Both the position numbers and the translations under genes were made by a program. Positions 11,276 to 16,750 of a stretch of DNA of 42,958 nt are shown here, in pieces (the stretch's first letter is position 1; each line of letters starts with the position of its first letter). The stretch covers positions 1 to 42,958 of the forward strand of contig NIVC01004532.1 of assembly GCA_002269645.1 (NCBI GenBank), read 5' to 3'. Source of the stretch: Macrostomum lignano (taxonomy: Eukaryota). A model generated the notes under the pieces. It searched no databases and was not told the origin of the DNA. It saw only the letters and a program-made list of their open reading frames with translations.

Positions 11276-13034
11276 TCAGCCTTCTTTCGCAAACATCTCA
11301 TTGTACTTTTGCACCATTCTCTTGACGCTGGTCAGAACAGGCATTGGTCCGGGCACGCAGTCGCGTATGATCTCGTCCAGATCAGTTGCGCTATCCGTAG
11401 CTGCGCCACTCGACCCAACAGACTCGTAGTCGAGGGCCTCGTCAAGCTCGGATTTCGCGTCGCTCTCGACCTGAGAGTTGACCACGTTTGCGGGCAGGAA
11501 GCTGAAACTGTGAGTGGCACTCGAATGATAGGTCAGATACGAATAGCCGTCCCTGGTGCCAACCAGCATGTCGTCTTGGCTGCTACTGCTGTCGCTGTAC
11601 AGGAAGAACCTGCTGGATTTGGCACCCCACGAGTTGGCGTGATTCTGCGATCGCGACCGTTGATGGGCGGCGGACCGTTTCGACGGCTGTTTATTGCGCT
11701 TTCGGCAGCAGCCGCCGCCGCCGCCACCGCCGCCGCCCCGCTTCTGCTGCCGCCTCGATATAAATTCGTTATAATCCTGCCGCGGAGCGCTGGCCAGCGG
11801 AGTGGCGCCTTCGCTGTCAGCGGTCGGCGTGGAAAATGATTGAGTGTGCGTGAGCGTCACCGGCTGGCCTTGCGTGACCGCGCTATCTTGCGGCGACGCC
11901 GCTCCCTCCGGCATATTGTCGGACACATCGGATCTCTCAATTGTCAGTGTCTCTTTTTCGCTGAACGCTGTCGCACCGTACTCCTGTGACGGTTGCATAG
12001 CAACCGGCGAGTACTGGCTTTCTGGCTTCATTTCTGAAGAGCCCACTGCCTCTTCGCCCGGCGAGTCCAGTTCCTGCATCTGCGATGGTCCGAATCGTTC
12101 GTCGGTGCCGCTTCCCGTTGACTGTTGCTGCACAGAGGCGACTTTGCCCGGCGAGTCCAGTTCCTGCGTCTGCGAAGGACCGAATCGTTCGTCGGTGCCG
12201 CTTCCCTTTGAGTGCTGCTGCACAGAGGCGACTTTGCCCGGGGTTGCTGACTCCTCGTCCGCTTGCACTCGGCCGGATCGACTTGGCCCGATGGGGAACA
12301 GCGCCTCCCGACCCAGCGAGGCCCGGCGCGGCTTGGCGGCTGTCGCCCTCGACATTGGTGACGCCACGATCCGCTTGGGACCGCCGGAGTCTTCGCTGTT
12401 CGCCTGCTGGCCAGTGGGGGTCGGCGGAAGCTCGCTGCTGTACACCTGCGCCAGGCCCTCCAAATGGTCGGAGGCCTCCTTGAGCAGGCCGACGATGTTG
12501 CCACCGCGGCCGCCGACGTTGTGACCAGCCGATTGCGAAGAGCCGCTGTCTTCAAACCCGCCACCGGCCTCGGAACCATTGGCGGCGCTCGTCTCGTAGC
12601 TGCGCAGGAAGCAGCTGCCGGCTTCGACCAGCTTCCTGACTGCGGTCGATTGGCCGCGGAAAAGGGATGCCACGGCCGAGTGATTGCTGACCAGCGTCAC
12701 CGACAGGGGCAGCCCGGCGATGCCGCTGTCCGGTACGGCTAGCGGCGGCAGCTCGGACAGGCCGGTCTTGAAGCTGGACGGCGCCCAGTCAACGAACTGA
12801 ACTCGGCCGCGCTCGCGCAGCGACAGCAGCGCCTGCTCGATGTCGGCTGTCTTGGCCGCGCCTCGGTAGATGAGCGCCCCGGCCATGTGCTTGCCCTGGC
12901 GCAGGTCCACATCCGCTAGCTGACCATCGGGCTCCATCAAAGCCGAAGTGATGCCGATGGCGCTCGAGCGCTCCTTGCCGACTGCCGAGGCTGCAGTAAA
13001 CGGCGCGCAGGCCACGATGGGGTGCTTCAGCTGC
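11276..13034 (-). CDS. Tubulin-like gene, last exon (C-terminal half of the fold plus ~380-aa tail)
   Basis: Acceptor CCCGCAG|G at 13035; QLKHPIVACAPF aligns to alpha-tubulin RIHFPLATYAPV; open to the stop at 11276. Confidence 0.9.
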
Positions 13035-15701
13035 CTGCGGGTTGGTTGGGAAGCCTCGGAATACCATTTGATCCTGAAACTGATGACTGTCCTGACATTC
13101 CTGACCATCCTGACCATCCTGACCATCCTGACCATCCTGAACATCCTGACCATCCTGAACATCCTGACCATCCTGACCATCCTGACCATCCTGACCATCC
13201 TGACCATCCTGACCATCCTGACCATCCTGACCATCCTGACCATCTTGACTATCCTGACCATCCTGACCATCCTGACCATCTTGACTATCCTGACCATCCT
13301 GACCATCCTGACCATCCTGACCATCCTGAACATCCTGACCATCCTGACCATCCTGACCATCCTGACCATCCTGACCATCCTGACCATCCTGACCATCCTG
13401 ACCATCCTGACCATCCTGACCATCCTGACCATCCTGACCATCTTGACTATCCTGACCATCCTGACCATCCTGACCATCCTGACCATCCTGACCATCCTGA
13501 CCATCCTGACCATCCTGACCATCCTGAACATCCTGACCATCCTGACCATCCTGACCATCCTGACCATCCTGACCATCCTGACCATCCTGACCATCCTGAC
13601 CATCCTGACCATCCTGACCATCCTGACCATCCTGAACATCCTGACCATCCTGACCATCCTGACCATCCTGACCATCCTGACCATCCTGACCATCCTGACC
13701 ATCCTGACTATCCTGACCATCCTGACCATCCTGACCATCTTGACTATCCTGACCATCCTGACCATCCTGACCATCCTGACCATCCTGACCATCCTGACCA
13801 TCCTGACCATCTTGACTATCCTGACCATCCTGACCATCCTGAACATCCTGACCATCCTGAACATCCTGAACATCCTGAACATCCTGACCATCCTGACCAT
13901 CCTGACCGTCCTAACCATCCTGACTATCCTGACCATCTTGACTATCCTGACCATCCTGACCATCCTGACCATCCTGACCGTCCTGACCATCCTGACTATC
14001 CTGACCAATTCTGACCATCCCATTCTGACCAATTCTGACCATCCTGACCATCCTGACCATCCTGACCATCCTGACCATCCTGACCATCCTGACCATCCTG
14101 ACCATCCTGACCATCCTGACTATCCTGACTGTCCTGACCATCCTGACCATCCTGACCATCCTGACCATCCTGACCGTCCTGACCATCCTGACCATCCTGA
14201 CCATCCTGACCATCCTGACCGTCCTGACCATCCTGACCATCCCATCCTGACCATCCTGACCATTGACTGACCATAACCATCCTGACCATCCTGACCATCC
14301 TCCTGACCATCCCATCCTGACCATCTTGACAGTCCTGACCATATTGACCATCCTGACCATCCTGACCATCCTGACCATCCTGACCATCCTGACCATCCTG
14401 ACCCATATTGACCATTCTGACCATCCTGAAAAGCCATCCTGAATTCCCTATTTGTCAAGTGACTGTCGCAGTACTTACTTAAACGGCAGTACATTGCTGC
14501 AAATGTTGGCAATGTTGCACATCATGGTGCCTGGAAATCTCTCCATCACGGTCAGGTTGCTGAAGCACATGGCGAGCATGCGATTCAGATGGGCAAAGGT
14601 GGCGCCACCGTACAGGCTGAGGCCGGACCTGCACAAATTGAACATGGCCGAGTTGGTGACGGAGAAGGACAACGAAGTGTAGTCCTTAGACTCGTATGAG
14701 TATAGCATCGAGTTGACAAGTTCGCAGGTGCTCTGCAGGCCGCTGTTGCCCGAGCTGACGCTCAGCTCAAGTACCTGCAGACGGGAATCGAACTCGGACC
14801 TTAGCTCCTCCAGGTAGGACACCGACAGGCCGCTGCCAGTGCCGCCGCCGGTGCTGTGAACAAGAAATGCGGTCGGCGTCACATCCGACTTCTCAGAGAG
14901 CCAGCGAAACCTTTCAACTGCTTCCGGCAGGAGGTTGCGGCGGAAGTCGCGCCGGCCGCGCATGTAGTTGAACCCAGAGTCCGCGCTGTCGCTGAGCAGC
15001 TGCCGGGTGCTGAACAACTCCCTGTAGGGCCCGACTCGAATCTCGTCTGCGGAAAAACAGGTCAGACTAATCAAGACATCAAAATCCGTTACTCAAATTC
15101 TGATTGGCTGTTTTTTAACTGGTCTGTCTGCCCTGTTGACACCCACCTCACTCCGCAAGCTACCCTCCGATTCTGATTGGCTGCCTTTTAACTGGTCTGT
15201 CTGCCCTGTTGACACCCACCTCACTCCGCAAGCTACCCCTCCGATTCTGATTGGCTGCCTTTTAACTGGTCTGTCTGCCCTGTTGACACCCACCTCACTC
15301 CGCAAACTACTTCTTCGATTCGGATTGGCCGCTTCCAAATTAGAGTTTCAACGATGAAGGAGAGACAGAAGCAGCTAACCTATAAAGCGTATGCTTACCA
15401 ATACACGTTGGATCCGTATCTAAAAAGATCGACCTGGGCATGAAATGGCCGTTCTGATTGCGTAGAAACATTGCGTCATAGAAACCGTTGCTAGGGCAGT
15501 CGGGCTTGGCTAGGCCGCTTTTTTGAACATTGTGCTCAAGACAGAGCAGCTCCCAAATCGCGTTGCCGATCTGTACTCCAGCCTGACCCACGTGGAGAGT
15601 CAGGAATGGCCGGGCCTGGGCGAACAGAACAAAACGAGTATACGAGCTATATGGTTTGTCTTATCTTAATTGACTGATTTTGCCTGAACTACCCTAAGCA
15701 T
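11276..15701 (-). CDS. Divergent alpha-tubulin-like protein with long C-terminal extension, ~850 aa; exons 15701-15693 (tentative), 15615-15399, 15046-14479, 13034-11276
   Basis: HVGQAGVQIGNAIWELLCLEH, PRSIFLDTDP, GGGTGSG signature (14829-14849), GKHMAGALIYRG, alpha-type QFVDWAP. GT-AG junctions join in frame (217+568+1759 nt). The start exon is uncertain. Confidence 0.9.
12058..12241 (-). repeat. Coding 90-bp (30-aa) tandem duplication in the tubulin tail
   Basis: PGKVASVQQ(H/Q)S(K/T)GSGTDERFGPSQ(T/M)QELDS occurs twice. Confidence 0.9.
13091..14430. repeat. 9-bp microsatellite (TCCTGACCA)n filling tubulin intron 3
   Basis: About 145 tandem units; source of the MVR/ILT/DHP/GQD/WSG pseudo-ORFs. 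Confidence 0.97.
14479..15046 (-). CDS. Tubulin-like gene, exon 3
   Basis: Acceptor TTTTTCCGCAG, donor AA|GTAAGT; DEIRVGPYRELF...HSTGGGTGSG...SNVLPFK. Confidence 0.92.
15098..15325. repeat. ~73-bp minisatellite, ~3 copies, in tubulin intron 2
   Basis: TTCTGATTGGCTG...recurs at 15098, 15171 and 15245. Confidence 0.9.
15399..15615 (-). CDS. Tubulin-like gene, exon 2
   Basis: Acceptor GCCCAG, donor G|GTAAGC; ARPFLTLHVGQAGVQIGNAIWELLCLEH...DPTCI. Confidence 0.88.
15693..15701 (-). CDS. Tentative start micro-exon (Met-Leu-Arg) of the tubulin-like gene
   Basis: ATG CTT AGG|GTAGTT gives a 77-nt phase-0 intron. Alpha-tubulin genes often have a tiny first coding exon. Not unique. Confidence 0.4.
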
Positions 15702-16124
15702 GTCTCCCGTTTTTGTATTACAGATCAGGGAACGATGGGCAATGCTTGTACGTTTTGCTGACTCTTCATGACAGGAACAAATGTAAACTTACATTCTCGT
15801 TGAAGGACATTTCCTTGTTGTTCCAATCTTCTGTTAGCTCAAGCAAACTTGGCCGACTTATGCTGTTTCTCCTAACAGCAGAATCAATGAGCAACGCAGA
15901 ACTGCTGCGCAGACCCTGGTAGAGAATTGCTGAAATTTCGCTCTGCCTTTGAGGCCATAGACATATCGTATGCCTGTCTTTTAATAAACAAAACAATTGT
16001 GCGATGCTTTCTAGTGACACATTTTTTAGAAATGCACTCTTAAGTACGCGAGCACAGAGCAGCACTCACTATATATACGTTTGGAAAGATTTGCTACGAG
16101 AAATCTGACGAGACAAAGGATTAG

Positions 16125-16750
16125 TTAAACAGTCAGAAAGACACTCAGGTAGCCAGGCAGACTGACAGGTTTAACAGTCATAGAGACACTCAGGTAGCCA
16201 GGCAGACTGACAGGTCTAACAGTCATAGAGACACTCAGGTAGCCAGGCAGACTGACAGGTCTAACAGTCATAGAGACACTCAGGTAGCCAGGCAGACTCA
16301 CAGGTTTAACAGTCATAGACACTCAGATGGACAGGCAGACTGACAGGTTTAACAGTCATAGACACTCAGATGGACAGGCAGACTGACAGGTTTAACAGTC
16401 ATAGAGACACTCAGGTAGCCAGGCAGACTGACAGGCTTAACAGTCATAGAGACACTCAGGTGGACAGGCAGACTGACAGGCTTAACAGTCATAGAGACAC
16501 TCAGGTGGACAGGCAGACTGACAGGTTTAACAGTCATAGAGACACTCAGGTAGCCAGGCAGACTGACAGGCTTAACAGTCATAGAGACACTCAGGTGGAC
16601 AGGCAGACTGACAGGCTTAACAGTCATAGAGACACTCAGGTGGACAGGCAGACTGACAGGTTTAACAGTCATAGAGACACTCAGGTAGCCAGGCAGACTG
16701 ACAGGCTTAACAGTCATAGAGGCACTCAGGTGCACAGGCAGACTGACAGC
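16125..16750. repeat. 45-bp minisatellite upstream of the tubulin gene
   Basis: AACAGTCATAGAGACACTCAGGT(A/G)G(C/A)CAGGCAGACTGACAGG units, ~14 copies. Confidence 0.95.

Follow-up and report, generated by a model that had tools for sequence, protein, structure and literature searches.

The Mlig018576 locus

The window analysed here, 42,958 bp long, is the whole of contig NIVC01004532.1 from the Mlig_3_7 assembly of Macrostomum lignano (GCA_002269645.1), and it carries on its minus strand the gene Mlig018576, whose product consists of a tubulin core followed by a low-complexity tail of ~390 amino acids (aa). In the reconstructed model the gene has four coding exons, GT-AG introns throughout and a product of 853 aa. 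The analysis shows this product to be an alpha-derived, transcribed and selectively maintained tubulin-fold protein without any of the three residues N249, D251 and E254 (alpha-tubulin numbering) of the T7 loop and helix H8.

Coding exon 1 (15793..15810; all gene features given here lie on the minus strand) encodes MSFNEN and is followed by a GTAAGT donor, its start being annotated also in g4, a homeologue of the gene (P0265). According to the gene model, coding exon 2 (15399..15615, 217 nt) covers S1, the T1 loop GQAGVQIG (15588-15565), the H1-S2 loop and T2, and a 217-nt exon occupies the equivalent position in Mlig033756, a paralogue in the same genome that is referred to below as group B, with Mlig018576 as group A. 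Coding exon 3 (14479..15046), defined by the gene model and by HMMER, runs from T3 to H8 and contains both GGGTGSG (14849-14829) and the T7/H8 segment. Coding exon 4 (11276..13034), the frame of which was assigned from substitutions, stops and an indel, encodes S7 to H12 (core to ~12428) and then the Ser/Gly/Ala/Gln-rich tail, with the stop codon at 11278-11276. The GenBank protein BOX15_Mlig018576g1 (P0001, 641 aa, labelled 'partial') has three introns identical to those of the reconstructed model and runs in frame upstream of the exon 1 start.

Loss of the T7/H8 residues

The T7 loop and helix H8 are encoded at 14481..14543, the minus-strand translation of 14543-14481 being ERFPGTMMCNIANICSNVLPF. 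An earlier note on this DNA had drawn attention to the span 14479-14545, which is this segment together with the last two bases of the exon, part of a Lys codon that the intron splits, and had claimed a gap-free alignment with alpha-tubulin in which all three residues are replaced. Translation, HMMER and MAFFT bear this out: HMMER aligns ERFPGTMMCNIANICSNVLPF without gaps to solved alpha-tubulins inside a 386-residue match (E 7e-78), MAFFT gives the same result, and alpha N249, D251 and E254 correspond to M254, N256 and N259 of Mlig018576 (N249M, D251N, E254N). The motifs named in the same note, GGGTGSG, GKHMAG (12895-12878) and QFVDWAP (12799-12779), were all found as claimed; a further loss, the replacement of T3 Asn101 by Phe, had not been listed there.

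Among 40 alpha-type tubulins aligned with Mlig018576, N is found at 249 in 37/40, D at 251 in 37/40 and E at 254 in 39/40, and N249 and D251 are kept in the aligned human beta, gamma and epsilon as well. The position of the catalytic Glu is occupied by Lys in beta and by Gly in gamma, and the nucleotide faced by the T7 loop of beta or gamma is not hydrolysed, the catalytic Glu being missing there. Group B is also without all three residues, having S, G and G along with a one-residue deletion. M. lignano keeps normal alpha-tubulin, of which Mlig006955 is an example, with NVDITE intact.

Alpha D251 and E254 are implicated as the catalytic residues for hydrolysis of the guanosine triphosphate (GTP) bound to the beta subunit of the neighbouring dimer (PMC10319017). 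The engineered human alpha variants E254N and E254A fail to hydrolyse GTP and yet polymerise, forming stable microtubules that never undergo catastrophe (PMC8764682). Because these two substitutions abolish hydrolysis in the human protein (PMC8764682), it is reasonable to call Mlig018576, which carries exactly E254N, dead in its GTPase-activating (GAP) function. The engineered mutants are, however, otherwise wild type and competent for assembly, whereas Mlig018576 is also without D251, N249 and most of the conserved lattice-contact residues.

Tubulin class

Class was assessed against human TUBA1B, TUBB, TUBG1, TUBD1 and TUBE1, each confirmed as an exact database entry under that name. Only two Pfam families match, Tubulin (PF00091, 103 bits, cut-off 33) and Tubulin_C (PF03953, 85 bits, cut-off 26.6), and the top 60 sequence matches in the PDB are alpha-tubulins without exception (60/60, ~252-266 bits). 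In phmmer the Mlig018576 core scores 261-274 bits with alpha, 155-160 with beta, 124 with gamma, 119 with epsilon and 30 with delta, an order of classes that is the same for group B; an epsilon-like database protein reaches only 71-84 bits against Mlig018576. A neighbour-joining tree of 32 tubulins (Kimura distances, 200 bootstraps), which spanned alpha, beta, gamma, delta and epsilon and left out zeta-tubulin, unites groups A and B in 100% of the bootstraps and places their clade with alpha, apart from the other four classes, in 99.5%.

Two local features agree with this placement. The T1 loop reads GQAGVQIG in Mlig018576 and GQAGIQIG in group B, the corresponding sequence in human beta, gamma, delta and epsilon being GQCG; the S9-S10 insertion of eight residues specific to alpha-tubulin, which does not occur in the beta, gamma and epsilon references, is present as SGIAGLPL (12704..12727, aligned to GDLAKVQR) in Mlig018576 and as SGFADVPI in group B. 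The termini are not those of alpha: the N-terminal MREC/MREI tetrapeptide is gone, the N-terminus of Mlig018576 being MSFNENARPFLT, and in place of the acidic C-terminal EEY tail the protein ends in its ~390-aa extension (...MFAKEG). On the strength of the phmmer scores, the 99.5% bootstrap value, GQAG and the S9-S10 insertion, Mlig018576 is a derivative of alpha-tubulin and neither a delta- nor an epsilon-tubulin. The alpha-like identity proposed in the earlier note is upheld by the same four lines of evidence; of the placement within delta, epsilon or zeta that it had named as the alternative, delta and epsilon are ruled out by the bit scores and the tree, and zeta lay outside the comparison. 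Membership of the gamma-tubulins was also considered and is ruled out by 124 bits as against 261 to alpha.

Transcription and selection

The annotation of the assembly was derived from a genome-guided RNA sequencing (RNA-seq) transcriptome, built with StringTie/TACO and combined with de novo assembly, from which novel transcripts below 0.5 reads per kilobase per million (RPKM) were dropped if they did not overlap the de novo assembly (PMC5730564). Since the gene model stems from this annotation, the Mlig018576 locus is transcribed and its introns have RNA support.

Ratios of non-synonymous to synonymous substitution rates (dN/dS, omega) were taken within each paralogue group, synonymous sites between A and B being saturated at 46% amino-acid identity. 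Between g1 and g4 of Mlig018576 the core has a dS of 0.043 and a dN of 0.005, giving an omega of 0.12 (13 synonymous and 5 non-synonymous substitutions; Fisher p 2e-5), and the tail has an omega of 0.26; in the group B copies the values are 0.067 for the core (p 4e-7) and 0.18 for the tail. Mismatches are fewer in exons 2-3 (5/785) than in introns 1-2 (11/289; p 5e-4). Both paralogue groups are under purifying selection, with dN/dS in neither core near 1. The two other grounds for rejection named in the earlier note, a missing transcript and a dN/dS close to 1, therefore do not apply.

Reading frame of the C-terminal tail

The GenBank coding sequence (P0001, and P0265 in the homeologue) leaves the long frame of exon 4 through a 10-nt gap without GT/AG borders after ...VASVQQ (~12205-12214) and stops at 12028, which yields the 641-aa model. 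This frame switch was rejected and the long frame down to 11276 taken as coding, because of four observations. Past the switch point, substitutions between g1 and g4, counted in the long frame, number 2, 5 and 12 at the first, second and third codon positions (p 0.016); this frame stays free of stops over 250 codons, as against 4 and 10 stops in the other two; the only indel between the homeologues is of 9 nt and in frame; and the region beyond the stop at 11276 is far more divergent between g1 and g4. An independent model, UniProt A0A1I8HZ98, reads through to the same C-terminus as the long frame.

Rich in Ser, Gly, Ala and Gln, the tail includes two tandem 30-aa coding repeats (12062..12241, from repeat analysis) of the form PGKVASVQQ.S.GSGTDERFGPSQ.QELDS. 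Further towards its end (window 11675-11755) a Gly9 run lies between basic clusters (RRQQKR ... CCRKRNKQPSKR), and group B has near its own end a similar patch of Cys and basic residues, WCLRRRSKSRRPG. A C-terminal motif common to A and B was considered and is unsupported: BLASTP of the last ~65 residues of each, which include the patch in B and not in A, gave no alignment.

Divergence and paralogues

The Mlig018576 core is only 31% identical to human alpha; over the same columns human alpha is 41.5% identical to human beta and 32% to gamma. By per-segment counts, ~40% of the 226 positions that are invariant in eight canonical alphas are kept. In an exhaustive HMMER scan covering 1.84 billion representatives of ~15 billion proteins, the sole relative above the level of a generic alpha-tubulin (~260 bits) was the group B protein of M. 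lignano (P0008; 46% identity, 411 bits), and no further family members were returned by a word-indexed search of 5.8 billion sequences or by a profile search with both paralogues. So far, then, this appears to be a small, lineage-specific alpha-derived family with two paralogue groups, A (Mlig018576) and B (Mlig033756), that are 46% identical. Introns 1 and 2 are common to both groups, intron 3 is confined to group A, and the T4 loop of group B reads ACGGTGSG.

Predicted fold and surface conservation

An AlphaFold2 model built on a 42-sequence alignment has a mean predicted local distance difference test score (pLDDT) of 83.9 and a predicted template modelling score (pTM) of 0.87, and it contains the full tubulin series of secondary-structure elements. 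Helices H11 and H11' are followed in the model by a disordered insert at residues 423-443 (pLDDT <50) and then by H12 at 448-467 (pLDDT ~93); the predicted H12, IVGLLKEASDHLEGLAQVYSSEL, is encoded at 12428..12496, the insert before it being of ~21-25 aa. Foldseek returns as its top matches chains from alpha/beta-tubulin entries, at ~30-31% identity, the same level as that measured against alpha, and with a template modelling (TM) score of 0.93 normalised to the target.

Conservation is unevenly spread over this fold. Whether measured against alpha or between A and B, identity peaks in T1/H1 (71% and 60%, respectively), T2 (55% and 66%), T4 (42% and 61%), H7 (30% and 70%) and the H10-S9 loop (50% and 78%); by both measures it is lowest in H3, H4, T5, T7, H8, H10, H11 and H12. 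In the M-loop, Y282 and H283 are replaced by G and K in A and by R and T in B. Of the nucleotide-binding set, Mlig018576 keeps GQAG of T1, GGGTGSG of T4 and the equivalents of D69, N206 and N228, whereas E71 has become D, Y224 has become F, N101 is F (S in B) and the T5 loop is rewritten. Two residues of alpha that border the interdimer nucleotide site (PMC10319017), R2 and K352, are kept in A (R, K) and conservatively exchanged in B (K, R).

Genomic copies and repeats

The assembly holds three copies of the Mlig018576 locus, namely the window, NIVC01002544.1 (L001) and NIVC01000708.1 (L003), in keeping with a DV1 genome known to be redundant and recently duplicated. The copy on NIVC01002544.1 is 97-99% identical over ~17 kb and has one synonymous difference in 2,562 nt of coding sequence, and the homeologue g4, at a dS of ~0.05, sits on NIVC01000708.1. 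By cluster look-up the homeologous copies are g1 (on two contigs), g2 and g4 of Mlig018576, and g1 to g3 of Mlig033756.

Intron 3 (13035..14478, phase 2, GT-AG), missing from group B, consists mostly of a minisatellite (13090-14429) of ~150 copies of the 9-bp unit TCCTGACCA with 90% matches, translation of which gives long spurious open reading frames on both strands. Intron 2 holds a tandem repeat of 3.2 copies of 74 bp (window 15097-15329), and a 45-bp x 14 array (window 16124-16749) lies ~300 bp upstream of the start codon. The G+C content is ~60% across the 3' exon and intron 3 (window 12001-14000) as against 31-41% in the flanking 2-kb bins. The upstream neighbour, which encodes a 284-aa product with no Pfam match, is common to L002 and NIVC01000708.1.

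Comparison with known tubulins

Canonical alpha-tubulin (TUBA1B, Mlig006955) is the best match to Mlig018576 by sequence, profile and predicted fold, and the two have in common GQAGVQIG in T1, GGGTGSG, the N206 and N228 equivalents, QFVDW.P..FK, the 8-residue S9-S10 insertion, H11 and H12. The differences are nevertheless extensive. At 31% identity, Mlig018576 has replaced N249, D251, E254 and N101, has neither the MREC N-terminus nor the EEY tail, has a shorter H1-S2 loop with no clear K40, is diverged in the M-loop, H3, T5, H8 and H10, and carries the ~21-25-aa insert before H12 as well as the ~390-aa C-terminal extension. Beta and gamma differ from it in another way: N249 and D251 are retained in both, their T1 loop reads GQCG, and Mlig018576 scores 160 and 124 bits with them, far below its score with alpha.

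The closest published parallel is the alpha3 of Toxoplasma and other coccidia (the TGME49_231400 family), which has T and H/Q for D251 and E254, an altered N-terminal motif and an unusually long tail, and for which slow or no GAP activity and polymer stabilisation have been proposed (PMC10056924). Toxoplasma alpha3 (P0197) resembles Mlig018576 in being alpha-derived, in the loss of D251/E254, in its altered N-terminal motif and in its long tail. It differs in keeping N249, in having a Glu one position earlier, in being 38% identical to human alpha and in the length of its tail, 48 aa as against ~390 aa. Since it scores 351 bits with human alpha and only 167 with Mlig018576, the origin of the latter is independent of alpha3 and the likeness convergent.

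Flatworms themselves provide long alpha-like proteins in P0114 of the trematode Paragonimus and P0115 of a related trematode, both of ~1,035 aa. These are alpha-derived, with C-terminal extensions of ~590 aa that contain His-rich runs and with a modified T4 loop, SGGTGSG, but D251 and E254 are both retained, identity to human alpha is 47.5%, and a score of 200 bits points to no particular closeness to the Macrostomum clade. T7 losses are also seen in alpha-like proteins of independent origin from Opisthorchis felineus, from a water bug, from Tetrahymena and from metagenomes; non-canonical residues at 249/251/254 were noted in P0152 (O. felineus CRM22_002247; T, S, Q), P0200 (Ranatra chinensis) and the metagenomic P0186 and P0231. 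By score, both P0152 and P0197 lie nearer to canonical alpha than to the Macrostomum clade. The O. felineus protein, Toxoplasma alpha3 and the long alpha-likes of Paragonimus were each considered as orthologues and set aside, each being closer to canonical alpha.

Discussion

The reading that we favour, although by a little better than even chances, is that Mlig018576 encodes a predicted GTP-binding, GAP-dead and alpha-like module with a tubulin fold which is not dynamic and is probably not a bulk subunit of the microtubule lattice. The protein would bind GTP as a structural nucleotide and would not activate hydrolysis on any tubulin bound at its T7 face. Its drifted lateral and longitudinal contact surfaces make it probably not a bulk lattice subunit, and it may act instead either as a terminal or minor subunit or as a non-polymerising scaffold, the long, constrained and disordered tail supplying in both cases the specific interactions. 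A role in the bulk lattice is considered less likely than a static one because the surfaces that contact the lattice and those that bind motors and microtubule-associated proteins (MAPs) have drifted, even between A and B. Judged from sequence, this wider divergence argues against a protein that is a normal alpha subunit in all but its inactive catalytic loop, and it partly undercuts the functional proposal of the earlier note, plausible though that proposal is.

Several points weigh against this reading. The alignment given to AlphaFold2 consisted mostly of alpha-tubulins, so that the model leans to the alpha fold and is not independent evidence of class, and the class tree is distance-based and left out zeta-tubulin. 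The change at N101, E71D and the altered T5 loop make GTP binding itself a prediction. That R2 and K352 are kept in A and conservatively exchanged in B is a hint of a T7 face that could still come up against a nucleotide. Gamma-tubulin is as far from alpha (32%) as Mlig018576 and makes tubulin-tubulin contacts; as it is equally divergent, divergence alone does not exclude assembly. Searching full texts for Mlig018576, Mlig033756 and the UniProt accessions returned nothing, nor did searches of the supplements of three M. lignano transcriptome papers for the gene identifiers. Literature searches on Macrostomum sperm microtubules likewise gave nothing usable, and these look-ups brought to light no sign of expression in sperm or cilia, the structures suggested in the earlier note.

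The foremost rival, possible but distinctly less probable, is an alpha isotype that does enter the lattice, pairing with beta and leaving its GTP unhydrolysed so as to build hyperstable, GTP-like microtubules in a specialised structure. This was the first option raised in the earlier note, and the same role has been put forward for Toxoplasma alpha3. That human E254N and E254A polymerise and never undergo catastrophe (PMC8764682) is in its favour, as is the published natural precedent of Toxoplasma alpha3 with its long tail (PMC10056924), and it is also consistent with the kept or conservatively replaced R2 and K352 of the interdimer site, the retained H12 and alpha-specific S9-S10 insertion and the strong purifying selection. 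It is, however, difficult to reconcile with 31% identity to alpha and the survival of ~40% of the 226 invariant positions, or with the poor conservation of the M-loop, H3, H10, H11 and H12 even between A and B, elements which co-assembly should constrain; the loss of N249 and D251, both of which human beta, gamma and epsilon keep, speaks against it as well.

It is rather improbable that A and B pair with each other, or self-associate, into a tubulin-like dimer or filament of their own, non-hydrolysing and independent of canonical alpha/beta. Such an arrangement would accommodate the existence of two ancient groups, each retained as several homeologous copies and each constrained by purifying selection, the T3 and T5 loops that are not of the alpha type and are partly common to A and B (CEL(V/L)N and SNSAMF motifs), and the loss of the T7 residues in both. 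The pairing is, however, pure conjecture; conservation between A and B does not extend to H8, H10 and H11, and both groups are alpha-derived, with no beta-like feature in either.

That the locus is a decaying or neutral duplicate, or a misannotated repeat-rich region, is very improbable. It does lie among tandem repeats, the GenBank coding sequence has a non-canonical 10-nt gap and is flagged partial, and the M. lignano assembly is highly redundant (PMC5730564), but as far as sequence evidence goes a pseudogene is refuted by the 853-codon frame that is intact in three copies with a sole indel of 9 nt, by omega values of 0.12 in the core and 0.26 in the tail with significant Fisher tests, by the third-position substitution bias that includes the distal tail, and by the RNA-seq-based gene model and the confidently predicted fold. 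A centriolar tubulin of the delta, epsilon or zeta class, in which the loss of T7 would be unremarkable (human delta, too, is without the canonical NxDxxE motif), is the least credible of all, and is refuted for delta and epsilon by 30 and 119 bits as against 261-274 for alpha, by the 99.5% bootstrap grouping with alpha, by GQAG and by the S9-S10 insertion, zeta being outside the comparison.

The dynamic instability of microtubules is driven by the GTP hydrolysis that alpha E254 and D251 trigger, and to our knowledge hydrolysis-dead tubulins are at present studied only as engineered mutants. Mlig018576, with E254N, D251N and N249M combined, offers an animal and genetically tractable case from a family that purifying selection has maintained in two ancient paralogue groups, and would reveal the cellular use of a GAP-dead tubulin. 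RNA interference is available in M. lignano. Transgenesis has been established there (PMC5730564).

The novelty is lower than the earlier note had assumed, coccidian alpha3 being naturally without D251/E254 (PMC10056924) and other lineages having undergone independent losses, and we regard it as moderate because the Toxoplasma precedent has already been published. The Macrostomum family is an extreme variant and no new category, set apart by a triple loss that includes N249, by a distance from alpha as great as that of gamma and by its ~390-aa tail. Its origin independent of Toxoplasma alpha3 suggests that GAP-dead alpha-tubulins have evolved recurrently. Mlig018576 and Mlig033756 could even make up a private non-hydrolysing tubulin system, either capping canonical microtubules or locking them into a GTP-like state within a single specialised type of cell, or forming a static A-B filament, with the tails as MAP-like linkers; we consider this an unlikely proposal, but if true it would be a natural animal counterpart of engineered E254N tubulin. 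If instead the protein no longer polymerises, the alpha-tubulin fold would have been put to new use as a scaffold that binds GTP and is joined to a long disordered tail.

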